This document shows, piece by piece, positions 4,582 to 62,741 of a stretch of 64,000 nucleotides of DNA. Where the stretch lies: the NCBI GenBank assembly GCA_038496445.1, contig JALMLS010000579.1:248001-312000 (forward strand), in the 5' to 3' direction. The translations under genes were made by a program, and so were the position numbers. The notes under the pieces are model-generated. The model was not told the DNA's origin. It searched no databases and saw only the letters and a program-made list of their open reading frames with translations. Position 1 is the stretch's first letter. Each line of letters opens with the position of its first letter. This DNA comes from Trichosphaerium sp. ATCC 40318 (Eukaryota; Protista; Tubulinea).

Positions 4582-5970
4582 CTACCCATAGCTATATCTA
4601 ATACCCATTGACTTGACAACCTCTTCTGAAATATTATCACAGTCATGTACAGTAATACTTTTCAGGGCTTTCAAGTGCTTCAAGCAGTCACCAGTAATCA
4701 TGCCACAGTCATCTAACACAAGTTGTTCCAAGTTGACTAATGTATTCAAACCTGAGTTTGTAAAATCACAATAATCAAGGTGAAGATGTTTGACATTAGT
4801 CAACGATTTGATTCCGTCATCTGTAAATGATTGCTGGTTATTTATAATGCCTACTGTGTGTACATCACAAAGGCACTCAAGAAATTCATTTGTACATGTC
4901 GTTCTTGCAATGCCACCATTACCAAATTTAATCTCATGGACACCTTTGAGTGCCTTTATTCCTTCAACCCCTATATTATTGCAATCATGAAGATGAATGG
5001 TGTGAAGACCAGCAAGAGCTTTGAATCCCTCACCTGTCACGTTTAAACCATGAAGATGAATGGTGTGAACACCAGCAAGAGCTTTGATGCCCTTATCTGT
5101 CACTTTTGAACCAGAAAGACGAATTGTATGAACAACACCAAGACCTTCAATACCTTTGTCAGTAACATTAGTATATAGAAGACTTATTGAATGAACACCA
5201 GCAAGAGCTTCAACTCCTTCGTCTAATACTTTTGTATCATTCAAATGAATCGTATGAACACCAGCGAGTGCGATCACACCATCATCTGTTACACTTGTAT
5301 TACCAAGGTTTATAGTATGAACACCAGCAAGTGCTTTAATACCTTCATTTGTTATTGACGAACAGTTTTGAAGTGAGATTTCATGAACACCAGCAAGATA
5401 CTTAATACCTTCATCTGTAACTATAGTATTACTAAGGTCTATGGTATGGACACCAGCAAGAGCCTTAACACCTTCATCTGTCACTGTCGTATCACCAAGA
5501 AGAATAGTATGAACACCAGCAAGTGCAATCACTGCTTTATCCGTAATACGTGAAGCTCTTCCGAGATTTATAGAATGAACACCAGCAAGACATACAATAG
5601 CTTCATCATCAATAAGAGTTTGATAAAGGTTAATCGTATGAACTCCTGCAAGCCATTTAACACCTTCACCTGATACCTTAGTTCTACGAAGGTCAATTGT
5701 GTGAACTCCTTTAAATTTCTCCAGAAGACTGTCACAAGGAAACTCGTTACGGAAATTATTAAATAACCAGATTTTTGAGTGCTTAATGATACCCTTGTGT
5801 TTTATAACTTCAAGTGCTTGCTCGTTTGTTGCTATACTGACTCTGTAGTATCCGATAATGTCATGTATGATAGTAGAAATGAGATGACACGTTTGACAAG
5901 CTGCAAATCGTGCTTTCGTTGTAAACAAGAGAATACTCGCTATAATTTCTATTGGTAGATTCAATAACAA
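4582..5970 (-). CDS. F-box plus 22-aa leucine-rich repeat protein; long uninterrupted ORF
   Basis: N-terminal LLNLPIEIIASIL F-box-like motif and many repeats of consensus LAGVHTIxLxxTxVTDEGIKA. There is no in-frame ATG before the stop at 5995-5997, so a short upstream exon is likely. Confidence 0.85.
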   Translation of the reverse strand: MLLNLPIEIIASILLFTTKARFAACQTCHLISTIIHDIIGYYRVSIATNEQALEVIKHKGIIKHSKIWLFNNFRNEFPCDSLLEKFKGVHTIDLRRTKVSGEGVKWLAGVHTINLYQTLIDDEAIVCLAGVHSINLGRASRITDKAVIALAGVHTILLGDTTVTDEGVKALAGVHTIDLSNTIVTDEGIKYLAGVHEISLQNCSSITNEGIKALAGVHTINLGNTSVTDDGVIALAGVHTIHLNDTKVLDEGVEALAGVHSISLLYTNVTDKGIEGLGVVHTIRLSGSKVTDKGIKALAGVHTIHLHGLNVTGEGFKALAGLHTIHLHDCNNIGVEGIKALKGVHEIKFGNGGIARTTCTNEFLECLCDVHTVGIINNQQSFTDDGIKSLTNVKHLHLDYCDFTNSGLNTLVNLEQLVLDDCGMITGDCLKHLKALKSITVHDCDNISEEVVKSMGIRYSYG

Positions 5971-19968: not shown

Positions 19969-21578
19969 TTATTGATTCATACTTTCCTTCAACAACGTAA
20001 TAGCACGTTTACATATACTTATTCCAAACATTGCTACATGTGCCTCTTCTCTTTTAATACCAAGCAAACTCGCCATATACTCGTAAGCTTCATTCTTATT
20101 CATTTTCTTACTTCTCCAAAGAACATCAAAAACAGAATGTAGGTGAAGTCTGTAAATCTTACATTCAACTGAACAAGGTATTCCAAGAGGCTCTCCTTTC
20201 TCATGAACACAACTCTCATTTTTGAATTGTCTTTTGTTCTGATGTGCTTCATGCGTATTTCCGCAGTCAGGGCATATGTATACTAACCTTGCAACACGTA
20301 TAATGTAGTACGATATTCTTTTCCCACAATGACATGTCGATGGCTTGACATGATCTCTTTTCGTTCTAATAAGCTGCATTCTCTTACCACAAACGCAAGA
20401 AACATTCCATGTTTTCTCATCAATCTTTGTTGGTTTGATAGCTAAGCCATCATTCTCAGACTGAAAGGTTTCAGGGAAGTCACAGTAAGGCAGAGAATGG
20501 TATCTTTCATCGCATGGTTGGATTGCTTTTTTTTGATCTAAATCCTCACCAAAGTTCTTCTCTTTGTAGAGATTAGCCAAGTATTCTATCTCGTCAGCGT
20601 TTGCACCAAGATTCCTTACAGCGTTTATAACTCGATCAAGTATTCCAGCATCATGAATAGGTTTAATGAAAGCAGGTGTAGCACCGAGATAGTTTCTGTA
20701 TTTCAAAATATGAATGAATCTATAGTTTGGGTTTTTGCACTTGACTCGGTAACCACCAGCAAGACGGACTACATAGCCCTCAAAAGTAGGGTCTTCAAAG
20801 TTCCTTCTATCGACAGAATCATATACTGTAGGTCTTAAGACATGTAGCTTTGAAGCAACGTTGTCGAGATCAGCTGAAATCATTTCTTTCAAAGTTTTTC
20901 TTGAGTATGCTGCAAGAAGGTATAAACAACTTTTTTGGTATTGCCGTACTATTGTATTATCTAATGAACACATTTCAAAAGCATACGTGGTATCTTTATC
21001 CAAAAAAGAAAAGATTTCTACTTTTTCTTCATCTTTTTGAGAAAATTCTAAGATTTCGTAAAAGAGTTCTTTGTACGTGAGTCTACCGGAAGGTACTGTA
21101 TCATTAGCAAAGTTGTGACGACAAGAAACATGCCATGAGCCTTTATAGTTGAATAAAAGCATAAGAGTCCCGTCTTCTTTAGATTCAACTGAGACTGTTC
21201 TTTTTTTCTTCACATCGGCTAAAACACAATAAAAAGGCATGCTACAGTATGGCGGAGATGTACAGAGTCGCAAAACGACTCTAAAATATGATAATAGTGC
21301 AAAGAGGACGCACCATTGAAGAAACGAGTGAAAGCTTTGGCTACAACATTCCACGAGTTTTTTTCAAGTATTAGTGCTCTACAATCGTTTGTTATCTCGT
21401 TTCGCTTTGTGTGAGTTTGATGGTAGTTTAAAATGACAAGCGGTAGTGTTTCATGATGATGAACTACTAGTTTCCACTTTTTAGCTACTTTTTCCAGTCC
21501 TTCTCTTGATAGGGCTTCTTGTATTGCTAATGTAGCCCTGCTGTTCGTTTTATGTATACTGTGACTCTCTGCCATCAT
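19969..21578 (-). CDS. T4 Rnl1-type RNA ligase fused to a C-terminal DUF3268-like zinc-finger domain; probably one intron (21313-21219)
   Basis: ILNY..DCRALILEKNSWNVVAKAFTRFFN, motif I KEDGTL, AFEMCSLDNTIV, EGYVVR, RVKCKNPNY. C-terminus CPDCG..H..PLG..HSVFDVLW..EAYEYMASLLG..AHVAMF. Removing GTGCGT..TTTTAG (95 nt) joins the two ORFs in frame (504 aa). Confidence 0.8.
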
Positions 21579-23925: not shown

Positions 23926-24804
23926 TATTGCTGTTGTTGTATCGCTTGTGTTATTCTTGTCAAAATGAATGAATTTGAAATTGAATTGTGACACGAATTC
24001 GTGATGTATCAAAATTATTTGGAAAGTGGTTCGATTTAGTGTATGATACGAATTCGTTCGGTTTTTTATCAATTTTATTTGGAGCTCCCAAAAAAGGTAA
24101 CGATTCTCCTCATTTGACTACGGCTGAAGGTGTGTCAACAAGTATTCGATGTTAAAACACTCTCACAAAAGTGTCTTGAACGTGACGAGGTAGTTAGAGT
24201 CTTTCGACTCAAGCACCTTGGATTTTTTCTTCGGCAGATTAGTCACTTCAACAATGCGTTTCTTCTGATTGTCAGAAATATCAACGCAGGCGGAAAAAAT
24301 CCATCGCAGAAATCAAATTATGGGTGCTGTTTCGTACCCTACACAGCATGTTGACACTTGAACCTTATCCTAGCTTAATCAGCAGAAAGCGTGAAGTGTT
24401 CTCAAAACATAGCGATTCGTTCTCGAAGACCAAGTGCCTGGTAGCTAACACACACGAAATAACACTACAACCCCAAAATTTGGCGTAAAATTACGTACGT
24501 CCAAGCCTACGCCAATCATGCCAGAGAAATCTGCCAGCAAGAAATAAATCTGGGAAGAAAGGTTTAATTTGGTTTTTTTGGAGAAGATAATTTCTAAATT
24601 CAATCGTCATGAATCGTTTGTTTCGTGTAATCGCGAGGCGTAAAGTGTTTTTCTGAATTGTTTATTTTTAGCCATTGGAGAGTGTGAAGAACGTGTTTCG
24701 GCGGGTTGCTATTCAGGTAATGCTGAGCCTATTCAATTGTGAATAAGTCACTAAATTACTACAATAAACTAAACAAAGCTCGTCTTGTAACCAACACCAA
24801 AAAC

Positions 24805-25980
24805 ATGGCATCTAAATTCTCGGTACTTGATCTTAACCTAGTTTCCACGTGTACAAATAAGCTTATTAAACGAATAGATTATAATATCGGTCTTACTATG
24901 CTCTTTAATTGTATCATACGCGTCTGATCCTTTTGTTGGAGAGATAAAAATCTTCGCTGGTAATTTTGCCCCGAGAGGTTGGGCATTCTGTAACGGTCAG
25001 CTACTACGTAAGTTATTGAACAATGATTGAGAAACATATTCTGAAAATTTTGTTTAAGCAATGGCTGGAAACGACGCTTTGGTGAGTTTAATTGGAACTA
25101 CATACGGCGGTGATGGTAGAACTACTTTTGGGTGAGTATTTAAACCAAATTGATAATCAAAGTACACGTGAATACTCAAGCCTAAGTCATGCTTCGATGT
25201 TTTTAAGCCGTTTTCCTTTACAGCTTGGAAAAAGTGCTTATTCATACTAGGCTACCAGATCTTCGCGGAAGAGCCCCTGTACATTTTGGCCAAGGTCCAG
25301 GTACATATGGTTGTACAGTCAAATAATAACTAATGCTTACCAGGTTTACAAAGCGTGAGACTAGGACAACAGTTTGGAGCAGAAACTACAACTCTAGCAA
25401 CGGCGAACATGCCTTCTCATGCACACTCAGTATCATTAATGGACCAAACAGTCGATTTCACTACATCTACGACAACCATTGAAGGTCAACCTGCAATATC
25501 AGGAAGCGCTTCAATCACTGGTGATCCGAATGTCGACCTGAATTTAGATGTCACAGCTGATGTCACACTCTCAAGAGGGCTACCAGGAGAAGCACCACCT
25601 TGTACATCTGGTAGTCTATTTAACTTGTTGCGTGTTGTAGACACTTGTCAATCGTTGGATGCACGTTGTCCAATAAAAGTGGAGCAGAATAGAGTGATAG
25701 GAAGTACATCGGGTAATGTGAACCTTTCTCTTGGAGTGGATACATCAGGGTTGACAGTTGACAAAGGTACGTTTCGGCCCAAACAGCAAAGTTTGAACTT
25801 GTACGGCTCTTATTGTTTCTTTAAGGTACTTTAAGCGCAACAACAACTGTTGAAGCAACTGTTGATGTTACTGGAGACACAACATCTGCAGGAGGAGGTC
25901 AGTCTTTTTCGAACCATCAACCTTCTCTTGGTGTAAACTACATTATTGCTCTTCAAGGTATATTTCCATCACAAAGCTAG
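24805..25980 (+). CDS. Secreted phage tail-collar domain / microcystin-dependent-protein-like (tail-fibre-like) protein, 6 exons, 282 aa
   Basis: Exons 24805-24822, 24878-25007, 25059-25131, 25251-25300, 25344-25766 and 25826-25980 (849 nt, in frame, all GT-AG) translate to a signal peptide plus SDPFVGEIKIFAGNFAPRGWAFCNGQLL..LVSLIGTTYGGDGRTTFGLPDLRGRAPVHFGQGPGL..GAETTTL..NMPSHAH..GGGQSFSNHQPSLGVNYIIALQGIFPS. Confidence 0.92.
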
Positions 25981-26372
25981 TACTACAATAGAAACTAAAC
26001 AATAAAACTCCCTTTCCTGTTCTAATGGCTGAAGATGATTCACAAACACGTGAGTTTGCTTGATTATTGCGTGTAGCGCAAGTAAATATCTCATACAACA
26101 CCAATTTAGTTATTGTTATTTATGTACTATCAGTCCTCAGTTGGACACAAAACGTTATTTCTCAACCAGCTGATGAATGTTTAGATCATTTTAGTGTATA
26201 AATTAAAGAGCTTTTTTGACACTTGGGAGTTATATCCGAATTTTAACAGCATTTTCTTGCTCTTAAAAATGTTTATTTTCTGGATTTATTTTCTTCAAAC
26301 TTGAATGACACTGGTAGTATGTACAAAAAACACTCAAGTAATAAATCACAGTAGTATTAATTTATCTTGACT

Positions 26373-43476: not shown

Positions 43477-44676
43477 ATGTCTACAGTGCTTAACGTTGTA
43501 GTATATAGCATTGCGTTGATTATTGCTTCATTTTACGTAGAATCAGCTGTAGTTAAAGACTATATAATTGTCGTCGCAGGTATAGATTGGCATACGTCTA
43601 AAACAACTTGTGAAGGAGCAGGACTACAACTTGCTGAATTTGAGACTGAAACCGAATGGAATCAAGGGATTTCAGTAATAGGCAACGCTAGTCTACTCAA
43701 TAGATACTGGGTAGGCTTTAATAGAACAATCGACCCTCCTCAGAATTGCTTTGAGGTCGTAGATGAGATAGATTGCACTTGCAAGCAATGTTTGGCTGGA
43801 AACGCTACATTTTGCGATGTTTGCCGTTCTTACGTTGGGCTATTCAGATGGGTTGGTTCAAACAGATCTTTATCTGAAACAGACTTATACACTGAAACAA
43901 ACCTTATTCCATATCTTGAAACATATTGGCGTTCAGATGGACCTTCTATTAGTAGAGAAAATTGCGGTGAAATGCAGTATGATAACGGAAAGTGGATATT
44001 AAATGACCAAGCATGTGGTGACTCAGGAATAGCGTTTTGTCAGAATGTTACTATTGTAACACCTCCACCTACTTCAATGTCACCTGTGACAACGACAGGA
44101 CCACCTACAACGATAGAACCTGTGACAACGACAGAACCACCGACAACGATAGAACCACCTGTTGAGTCACCGACAATGGAGACTCCGGCAAGTACAAACA
44201 AAACTACTATTCTTATCAATGGAAAACCCATTATTTTCGTTGATGGCATACCTACTGTTACTACCTTGAATGATACATCAGATACTATCACTATAACATT
44301 CCAAGATGAAATTATACCTTTAAATATAACAAACTGTCCTGCTTCTAGTACAATAGTTATTGACGTCAAAGACGAAGAAACTCTCCAAAATAGCCTTGAA
44401 AATGGACGAAATTTCACGTTATTTTATCTTCCGGAGAATTGTGAGGAGCAATTCCAAGTGACTTTAAAGACACCAAGTAGAGAATGTACTGTGGATTCTG
44501 ACTTTATCAGTGGAAGAATTGTTGTACTACTTGATTTTGATAGTTGTGGTCAAGCTAATGAATCAAGTAGTACAATTAACGTAGTTTACTATGCTGTTCC
44601 TGTAGGTGTAGTAGTACTCGCTATTCTTGTAGCTGTTGCTTGTATTATTGTTATAAAAATAAAAAAAGCTTCATAA
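43477..44676 (+). CDS. Type I membrane protein with C-type lectin-like domain and Thr/Pro-rich stalk, intronless
   Basis: Signal peptide; WHTSKTTCEGAGLQLAEF..YWVGF..FRWVG..ENCGEM..WILNDQACG..AFCQ; TTEPP stalk; C-terminal transmembrane helix followed by KIKKAS. Confidence 0.8.
   Translation: MSTVLNVVVYSIALIIASFYVESAVVKDYIIVVAGIDWHTSKTTCEGAGLQLAEFETETEWNQGISVIGNASLLNRYWVGFNRTIDPPQNCFEVVDEIDCTCKQCLAGNATFCDVCRSYVGLFRWVGSNRSLSETDLYTETNLIPYLETYWRSDGPSISRENCGEMQYDNGKWILNDQACGDSGIAFCQNVTIVTPPPTSMSPVTTTGPPTTIEPVTTTEPPTTIEPPVESPTMETPASTNKTTILINGKPIIFVDGIPTVTTLNDTSDTITITFQDEIIPLNITNCPASSTIVIDVKDEETLQNSLENGRNFTLFYLPENCEEQFQVTLKTPSRECTVDSDFISGRIVVLLDFDSCGQANESSSTINVVYYAVPVGVVVLAILVAVACIIVIKIKKAS
44083..44156 (+). 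repeat. 36-bp tandem duplication encoding PVTTT(G/E)PPTTIE
   Basis: cctgtgacaacgacag(g/a)accacc(t/g)acaacgatagaa occurs at 44083 and 44119. Confidence 0.85.
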
Positions 44677-61478: not shown

Positions 61479-62741
61479 TTATAGAGCCACACAGGTTTCA
61501 ACTAGTGCTTTAGCTCCTTCTTTTGTTACTTGAGTATTCCTAACTCCAACGTATTTCGCCCCCTTCAGTGCTTTAATGCCTTCATCTGTAACTAAAGTAT
61601 CTGCAAGGTTAACGGTATGAGCACCTGCAAGCCATTTAATGCCTTCATCTGTAACAAAAGTGCCACTAAGGTTAATAGTGTGAACCCCAGCAAGTGCCTT
61701 AATGCCTTCATCCGTCACTAAAGTGCCACTCAGGCTAATACTATTAACTCCAGCAAGCGCCTTAATGCCTTCATCTGTTACTGAAGTATTATCAAGGTAA
61801 ATTGTATGAACGCCTCTAAGCGCTTTAATGCCTTCATCCGTTACTGAAGTACCATCAAGATTTATAATATGAACGCCTCTAAGATCTTTAATGCCTTTAT
61901 CCGTCACTGAAGTGCCACTCAGGCTAATTGTATGAACTCCAGCAAGCGCCTTAATGCTTTCATCTGTTACTGAAGTCTTATCAAGGTAAATGGTATGAAC
62001 ACCTGCAAGTGATTTAATGCCTTCATCTGTTACTGGAGTGTGAGAAATGTCAATAATGTGAACCCCAGCAAGTAATTTAATGGATTCATCCGCTACTGAA
62101 GTAGCCCGAAGGTTAATTTTATAAACACCTTTGAGCGCTTTGACACCTTCATCTGTAACAGAAGTGCCTCCAAGGTTTATAGTATGAACCCCAGCAAGTG
62201 CTTTAACACCTTCATTTGTTACCGATGTGCCTACAAGATTTATAGAGTGAACACCCTTGAGCTGCTTAGTGCCTTCACTTGTAACTGAAGTGTGACAAAG
62301 GTCTATAGTATGCACTCCAGCAAGGGCTGTTACGCCTTCATCAGTTACATCACAAAAAGCAAGACAAATTTTACTAACCCCTGAAAGCGCTTTAATACCT
62401 GTATCTGTTACTGGAGTGCCTTTAAAGTAAATACTTTGAACACCTGCAAACTTTTTGATGATATTGTCGTCAAAACAACTACCATCAAGCACGATTCTAG
62501 TGTGTCTGAGAATACCCTGATGTTTTAGAACTGATTCTGCTTGAATTACTGTTTTAATGGTGATACCTTTGTAGCCAATAACATCATGGACGATGGATGC
62601 GAACAAATGGCACGTTTGACAAGCTGCAAATCGCGATTTGGTTGTTTGGCGTAGTATATGCGCTAATATCTCTGTAGGCAGTCGTAGTAAACTCAAACTG
62701 GCGATGTCGTTGATTTTAACACGCTTTGAGGAGGAAAGCAT
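61479..62741 (-). CDS. F-box plus 22-aa leucine-rich repeat protein, intronless; paralog of 4582-5970
   Basis: LLRLPTEILAHIL..RFAACQTCHL, followed by about 14 repeats of LAGVHTINLSGTSVTDEGIKA visible as 66-bp DNA repeats. Confidence 0.9.
   Translation of the reverse strand: MLSSSKRVKINDIASLSLLRLPTEILAHILRQTTKSRFAACQTCHLFASIVHDVIGYKGITIKTVIQAESVLKHQGILRHTRIVLDGSCFDDNIIKKFAGVQSIYFKGTPVTDTGIKALSGVSKICLAFCDVTDEGVTALAGVHTIDLCHTSVTSEGTKQLKGVHSINLVGTSVTNEGVKALAGVHTINLGGTSVTDEGVKALKGVYKINLRATSVADESIKLLAGVHIIDISHTPVTDEGIKSLAGVHTIYLDKTSVTDESIKALAGVHTISLSGTSVTDKGIKDLRGVHIINLDGTSVTDEGIKALRGVHTIYLDNTSVTDEGIKALAGVNSISLSGTLVTDEGIKALAGVHTINLSGTFVTDEGIKWLAGAHTVNLADTLVTDEGIKALKGAKYVGVRNTQVTKEGAKALVETCVAL

Follow-up and report, generated by a model that had tools for sequence, protein, structure and literature searches.

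The closest described relatives of the gene analysed here are the MdpB-type ("microcystin-dependent protein") Collar-domain proteins of bacteria, especially a Flavobacteriia subfamily that carries a signal peptide (e.g., P0082 and P0034 of Flavobacterium amnicola) and is collinear over its full length with the protist protein. MdpB-type proteins are ~170–195 amino acids long, and their loci hold two or three adjacent copies, usually as tandem triplets, the products of which possibly assemble as heterotrimers. Likeness also extends to phage fibres of the T4 gp12/gp37 type, in which an H-x-H motif forms a metal site on the trimer axis; T4 gp12 binds lipopolysaccharide (LPS). Collar-domain proteins are further encoded by virophages and Organic Lake phycodnaviruses (PMC3671162; PMC12724248), and those of virophages are reported to be LPS-binding trimers (PMC12724248). 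The virophage tripartite tail proteins (DSLV2) and OLV18/OLV19 are short, are associated with eukaryotic hosts, and are the products of intronless viral structural genes that lie as conserved triplets beside capsid genes (PMC12724248; PMC3671162). In the literature searched, no paper describing a Collar-domain gene in a eukaryote was found.

In the 64-kb stretch of protist DNA that was analysed (hereafter the window), positions 24805–25980 of the plus strand hold six exons that are joined in frame by five GT–AG introns, giving an 849-nt coding sequence for a protein of 282 amino acids (scripted splice). The gene model of the original prediction is thus borne out exon by exon and intron by intron; every motif quoted in its support is present, and the gene is nearly invisible to an open reading frame (ORF) track, as claimed, the longest plain ORF being one of 159 residues that covers exon 5 only. 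A 5′ untranslated leader (24766–24804, defined by the start of the X4 transcript contig) precedes the initiator ATG at 24805, which is the first ATG downstream of an in-frame stop at 24724–24726. Exon 1 (24805–24822) contains the start codon and the first six codons of the predicted signal peptide, which is split at codon 6 by intron 1 (24823–24877; 55 nt, phase 0). Exon 2 (24878–25007) encodes the remainder of the signal peptide (to 24922), the mature N terminus and the beginning of the Collar domain; exon 3 (25059–25131) encodes the middle of that domain, and exon 4 (25251–25300), which the family profile supports in addition to the splice model and transcripts, encodes its end with the motif L-P-D-L-R-G-R. 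Intron 2 (25008–25058; 51 nt, phase 1) and intron 3 (25132–25250; 119 nt, phase 2) lie inside the Pfam Collar domain at codons 50 and 74, and intron 4 (25301–25343; 43 nt, phase 1) lies at codon 91, eight residues past the domain and in the same conserved block, in agreement with the claim that three introns interrupt the conserved N-terminal region. Exon 5 (25344–25766) encodes a conserved linker with the H-x-H motif, followed by most of a lineage-specific insert. Intron 5 (25767–25825; 59 nt, phase 1) falls within that insert at codon 232, and exon 6 (25826–25980) supplies the end of the insert, the C-terminal strand Q-P-x-L-x-x-N-Y-I-I-A-L-x-G-I-F-P-S and a TAG stop. The 3′ untranslated region (25981–26022) includes AATAAA at 26001–26006, shortly before the transcript contigs end at 26017–26022.

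Assembled transcripts from public RNA runs match this structure, all five junctions being exact with no mismatches, as the RNA check proposed with the original prediction called for. A 925-nt contig from X4 spans 24766–26017 with five of five introns removed and, at intron 1, provides the junction within the signal peptide; an 881-nt contig from X1 crosses four junctions, and contigs from X3 and X2 cross three and one, respectively, with the junction of intron 2 seen in X1, X3 and X4. Transcripts from "organism B", a near-identical strain or species, differ from the gene at five coding positions, three of them synonymous and two conservative replacements (A141T and A253V), a pattern that is weakly consistent with purifying selection. 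The same "organism B" runs (X2 and X3) also yielded abundant contigs of 1.08–1.14 kb (word depth 38 and 219) that match the locus at 25094–25131 and ~25934–25958 only, skipping the 802 nt between. These contigs represent homologues without the insert, and their loose ends lead into consensus family motifs with AT-rich codons; either eukaryotic paralogues or co-cultured bacteria could be their source.

The surroundings of the gene are those of an ordinary eukaryotic locus. Its neighbours are a gene with a saccharopine-dehydrogenase domain and a spliced leucine-rich repeat (LRR) gene, and the transcript of the LRR gene, which adjoins on the minus strand, is also spliced (26829/26883, CT..AC). 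Since the neighbour is spliced as well as the gene itself, the locus is ordinary eukaryotic chromatin rather than a bacterial contaminant. The window has a GC content of 37%, uniform composition and short introns, and no phage structural or viral genes were found in the surroundings of the gene. The original prediction of a true intron-bearing eukaryotic gene therefore stands on spliced transcripts and ordinary eukaryotic neighbours: the gene is a genuine nuclear, intron-bearing, transcribed gene of a microbial eukaryote whose DNA is rich in AT and in introns.

By its sequence, the predicted protein is clearly a member of the MdpB-type Collar-domain family. Identity with the Pfam Collar domain (PF07484), as originally proposed, was confirmed by exons 2 and 3, each of which exceeds the Pfam cut-off of 24 alone, the scores of 36 and 31.1 bits being those of single exons (exon 2 on profile positions 1–23 and exon 3 on 27–47). 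Against a profile of 30 homologues the spliced protein scored 230.8 bits (hmmsearch) in two segments split only by the insert, with profile positions 8–139 aligned to residues 7–138 and positions 151–193 to residues 236–281. All 21 invariant columns of the family alignment (A1) are kept, as are 25 of its 31 near-invariant columns. Over residues 22–120 the protein is ~70% identical to uninterrupted bacterial proteins of ~172 amino acids, and this match crosses four splice junctions, which argues that the gene model does not arise by chance; 72 of 100 residues of the mature N-terminal domain are identical in flavobacterial proteins, and identity with bacterial proteins over residues 250–282 is 55–64%. 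The family itself is very large. When the exon 2 frame was compared with one genome per bacterial species, at least 340 relatives in many phyla were confirmed, and a single flavobacterial member retrieved 8000 scored relatives. In PHROGs, exons 2, 5 and 6 match families of tail proteins or tail fibres, exons 5 and 6 occupying successive positions of phrog_8763, and in the ESM Atlas exon 5 leads to phage Gp10_C/Collar clusters only (scores of 0.86–0.89). NCBIfam returned no match.

Common to the MdpB-type proteins of that Flavobacteriia subfamily and the protist protein are a signal peptide (a predicted one in the protist), the P-F-x-G-E-I start of the mature chain, the Collar domain, the H-x-H motif and the C-terminal strand. 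In contrast to its bacterial counterparts, the protist gene is nuclear, is interrupted by five introns, carries a poly(A) signal and is single, no second copy having been detected in the window by tblastn; its product is longer by the insert. Tandem triplets of collar genes, each gene with a Bacteroidota-type signal peptide, were observed at L083:1148–3015, L040:577–3156 and L067:1383–3151, the first of these on a contig that is filed as viral and is bacterial in appearance. Many metagenomic proteins of ~475 amino acids consist of three collar modules fused in one chain.

Residues 1–21 have the appearance, by inspection, of a cleavable signal peptide: the n-region has a single lysine, the hydrophobic core extends over 14 residues without a charge, and S-Y-A precedes the predicted cut, placing small residues at positions −3 and −1. 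The C terminus is not hydrophobic, and the protein is without a membrane anchor, GPI signal or retention signal. A protein with these predicted features is probably released or delivered into the lumen of the endomembrane system. The original prediction held that bacterial homologues begin where the mature protist protein begins, and this is correct for most of them, which start with M-S-E-P-F; it fails for the large Flavobacteriia subfamily, in which a Sec signal peptide stands at that place. The further claim that the gene had been redirected to the secretory pathway was not sustained, as the nearest bacterial relatives already have a Sec signal peptide of 20–23 residues before P-F/I-x-G-E-I. 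Members of this subfamily give the best full-length matches, are nearest in the trees and align with residues 3–121 of the protist protein free of gaps. Secretion may thus be inherited and need not be a eukaryotic innovation, and the signal peptide may have come along with the transferred gene. Only 4–5 of 19 residues are identical between the protist and Flavobacteriia signal peptides, however, so homology of the signal peptide itself is not established by the comparison. Signal-like extensions at three further loci (L002, L048 and L062) were rejected as read-through of upstream non-coding sequence.

The feature that sets the protist protein apart is the insert at residues 139–235 (25487–25836, interrupted by intron 5), where ~97 amino acids replace the ~11 residues found at the same place in bacterial relatives (profile break 139/151). 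Three cysteines and a single N-x-S site occur in it, and its more hydrophobic core has an alternating hydrophobic pattern on either side. A phmmer search with exon 5 of 1.84 billion representative proteins from public genomes and metagenomes found no relative of the insert; this search bears on insert-carrying proteins, as insert-less eukaryotic copies would be hidden among thousands of bacterial matches. The best match of exon 5 reached at most 53 bits and was confined to its conserved first 30 residues. Neither the metagenome contigs nor the viral contigs scanned contained a relative of the insert, and the stop-free ORF around exon 5, used as a query, matched no protein among those of 91–290 amino acids. 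Several candidate relatives were examined and rejected: L082 was a chance match on a contig of 68% GC, and P0010, P0021 and P0022 were TPR, DUF748 and Ig-repeat proteins, which scored through the addition of weak repeat matches. A suspected internal duplication in the insert was not significant, 30 of 300 shuffled sequences scoring equally high. In all that was searched, the insert is unique to this lineage.

Comparison of the family profile with the PDB suggests how the protein might be built. The profile matched the long tail fibre 8KEC (3e-8) and the T4 gp12 structures 1OCY, 1PDI and 5IV5 (~2e-7), a likeness that covers ~70–90 residues only, with E values of 1e-7 to 1e-8. What the profile shares with T4 gp12/gp37-type fibres is the Collar domain and H-x-H, and a C-terminal G-x-Q-x-x-x-x-Q-P-x-L strand is also present in 8KEC; the family's H-x-H, which is invariant in alignment A1 and is H116-A-H118 in the protist protein (25418–25426), aligns with the H-x-H of 8KEC. 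Unlike those fibres, the protist protein has no long N-terminal shaft and no virion or baseplate context, and it has one H-x-H only. AlphaFold2 monomer models were too poor for a fold search (pLDDT 50 for the closest bacterial relative, P0082, with a 30-row alignment and 35 for exon 5). By analogy with the phage fibres, the following mechanism can be proposed. A 21-residue cleavable signal peptide would direct the chain into the endoplasmic reticulum, where three chains would intertwine, the N-terminal collar packing with the C-terminal strand at one end of the trimer and the H116/H118 pairs holding a metal ion on the threefold axis. Each chain would run to the distal tip and back, placing the insert exactly at the turn, so that the cysteine-containing insert could form an enlarged, lineage-specific binding head. 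Because related fibres bind LPS, glycan binding directed towards bacteria is the favoured guess for its activity; the ligand might be a polysaccharide of the cell surface, for instance the LPS or capsule of bacteria, and the function might be capture or recognition of bacteria. Taken as a whole, the explanation that a transcribed MdpB-type gene of bacterial origin encodes a secreted trimeric fibre with the insert as its binding head and a glycan as its ligand is considered likely.

The strongest competing account concerns function. The secreted protein may serve the cell's own surface or matrix, as a coat fibre, a scale or a cell–cell adhesion molecule, or may be part of a phage-tail-like apparatus, rather than act as a free bacteria-binding lectin. 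Such a role would suit an insert that is new and unrelated to known receptor-binding heads, but the protein has no anchor, repeat or matrix domain and no partner gene lies in the 64-kb window, and we regard this account as unlikely, albeit a serious contender. The particular form in which the collar protein would be the target-binding fibre of a domesticated extracellular device, similar to a tailocin or contractile injection system, is judged very improbable; if true, a eukaryote would be building or using a phage-tail-like extracellular toolkit.

If instead the secreted fibre binds bacterial surface sugars, as favoured here, a predator would be re-using the recognition hardware of its prey or of the phages of its prey, and the protein would offer a compact natural scaffold for the study of tip swapping on collar fibres. 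A new head domain appears to have been built precisely at the target-binding site of such fibres. Moreover, a Sec signal peptide from a bacterium may be able to pass straight into use in the eukaryotic secretory pathway.

With respect to origin, all relatives detected are bacterial or phage-like, and horizontal transfer from a bacterium to a eukaryote is the most economical and most likely reading of this distribution, the direction being suggested by the huge spread of the family in bacteria and phages as against a single eukaryotic lineage. In a maximum-likelihood tree of 78 rows, a branch with support of 97/84 sets apart the gene together with a single metagenomic protein and Flavobacteriaceae proteins that carry signal peptides. 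The addition of 29 flavobacterial representatives (107 rows) left the gene on that side of the branch (77/89) but not within the main flavobacterial clade. An AU test did not reject placement elsewhere (p 0.255). Our best guess is a donor among the Bacteroidota, possibly a Flavobacteriia-like one, in which direction the trees lean.

Several features point to a long residence in the host. Nucleotide identity with bacterial genes is at most 72%, and the GC content at third codon positions (GC3) is 27.6%, as compared to 24–33% in host genes. Relative synonymous codon usage (RSCU) correlated with that of host genes at r 0.72 and with that of AT-rich flavobacterial homologues at r 0.68; since these values are nearly equal, codon use alone cannot date the transfer. 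Host-like codon use, five spliceosomal introns and an AATAAA before the transcript end uphold the earlier description of a domesticated gene, and the transfer would have been old enough for five introns and a poly(A) signal to be gained and for codon usage to become that of the host. Searches of the flanks for mobile elements or terminal repeats found short repeats at chance level only. The same process is known from other bacterium-to-protist transfers, in which a gene of a bacterial family has likewise taken on host-like codons, introns and expression, along with a secretion signal. In this sense, the gene adds a new variant to a family already known, in a host that is unusual for it, and domestication of bacterial genes by protists is itself common. 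As protists often acquire genes by transfer, the case is of interest but no great surprise; what it adds is a phage or bacterial fibre module that persists in a eukaryote like any normal gene and has each of its introns confirmed by transcript data.

Entry by way of a eukaryotic virus that carried a collar gene, be it a giant virus, a virophage or a polinton-like element, would give a different route to the same locus. Virophages integrate into protist genomes, and the Collar-domain genes of virophages and Organic Lake phycodnaviruses described above (PMC3671162; PMC12724248) make such a carrier conceivable, as does a 275-kb IMG/VR contig that encodes a collar protein 67% identical over 57 residues. 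This viral protein (L084:1995–2228) is a 76-residue mini collar that joins a collar start to a C-terminal G-A-Y-P-S-R strand and has neither H-x-H nor a tip. Viral matches are nonetheless fewer and weaker than bacterial ones, comprising six loci that are mostly 53–61% identical, and the best of them, L083, has the look of a triplet from Bacteroidota whose signal peptides are bacterial. The viral scans gave no close sequence relative among the virophage collar proteins, and the insert likewise has no relative in the viral contigs scanned; neither terminal repeats nor viral genes surround the protist gene, and its five introns speak against a recent insertion. Viral entry is on balance distinctly improbable.

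Vertical descent of an old eukaryotic gene, with bacteria and phages not its source, would gain from the insert-less homologues in the two "organism B" runs, should these be eukaryotic paralogues. It is scarcely credible in view of the vast size of the family, of its scattered phylogenetic distribution across bacteria and phages, and of the 72% identity with flavobacterial proteins over 100 residues, which is far above what an ancient split would be expected to leave. In addition, neither the exon 5 matches nor the best 120 of the 8000 relatives retrieved with the nearest bacterial protein included a spliced eukaryotic source from MMETSP. Bacterial contamination or an assembly artefact, to which the high identity with bacterial proteins might have pointed, is refuted by the removal of five spliceosomal introns in transcripts of several runs, with spliced flanking genes on the same contig, uniform composition of the window and a eukaryotic poly(A) signal further reducing its probability to practically nil.

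Other parts of the window contain genes of separate interest. On the minus strand, 19969–21354 is an intronless ORF of 461 amino acids in which an Rnl1-type RNA ligase domain (41.5 bits) is followed by a DUF3268 zinc-finger domain (58.9 bits). Two intronless paralogues of 462 and 420 amino acids (4582–5970 and 61479–62741, both on the minus strand) combine an F-box-like N terminus with many leucine-rich repeats of the form A-G-V-H-T-I-x-L, and their best relatives are marine-protist transcripts from MMETSP, with 46% identity. On the plus strand, a 399-residue ORF at 43477–44676 has a signal-like N terminus, a weak, sub-threshold match to C-type lectins, a mucin-like stretch rich in threonine and proline, and a C-terminal membrane span.
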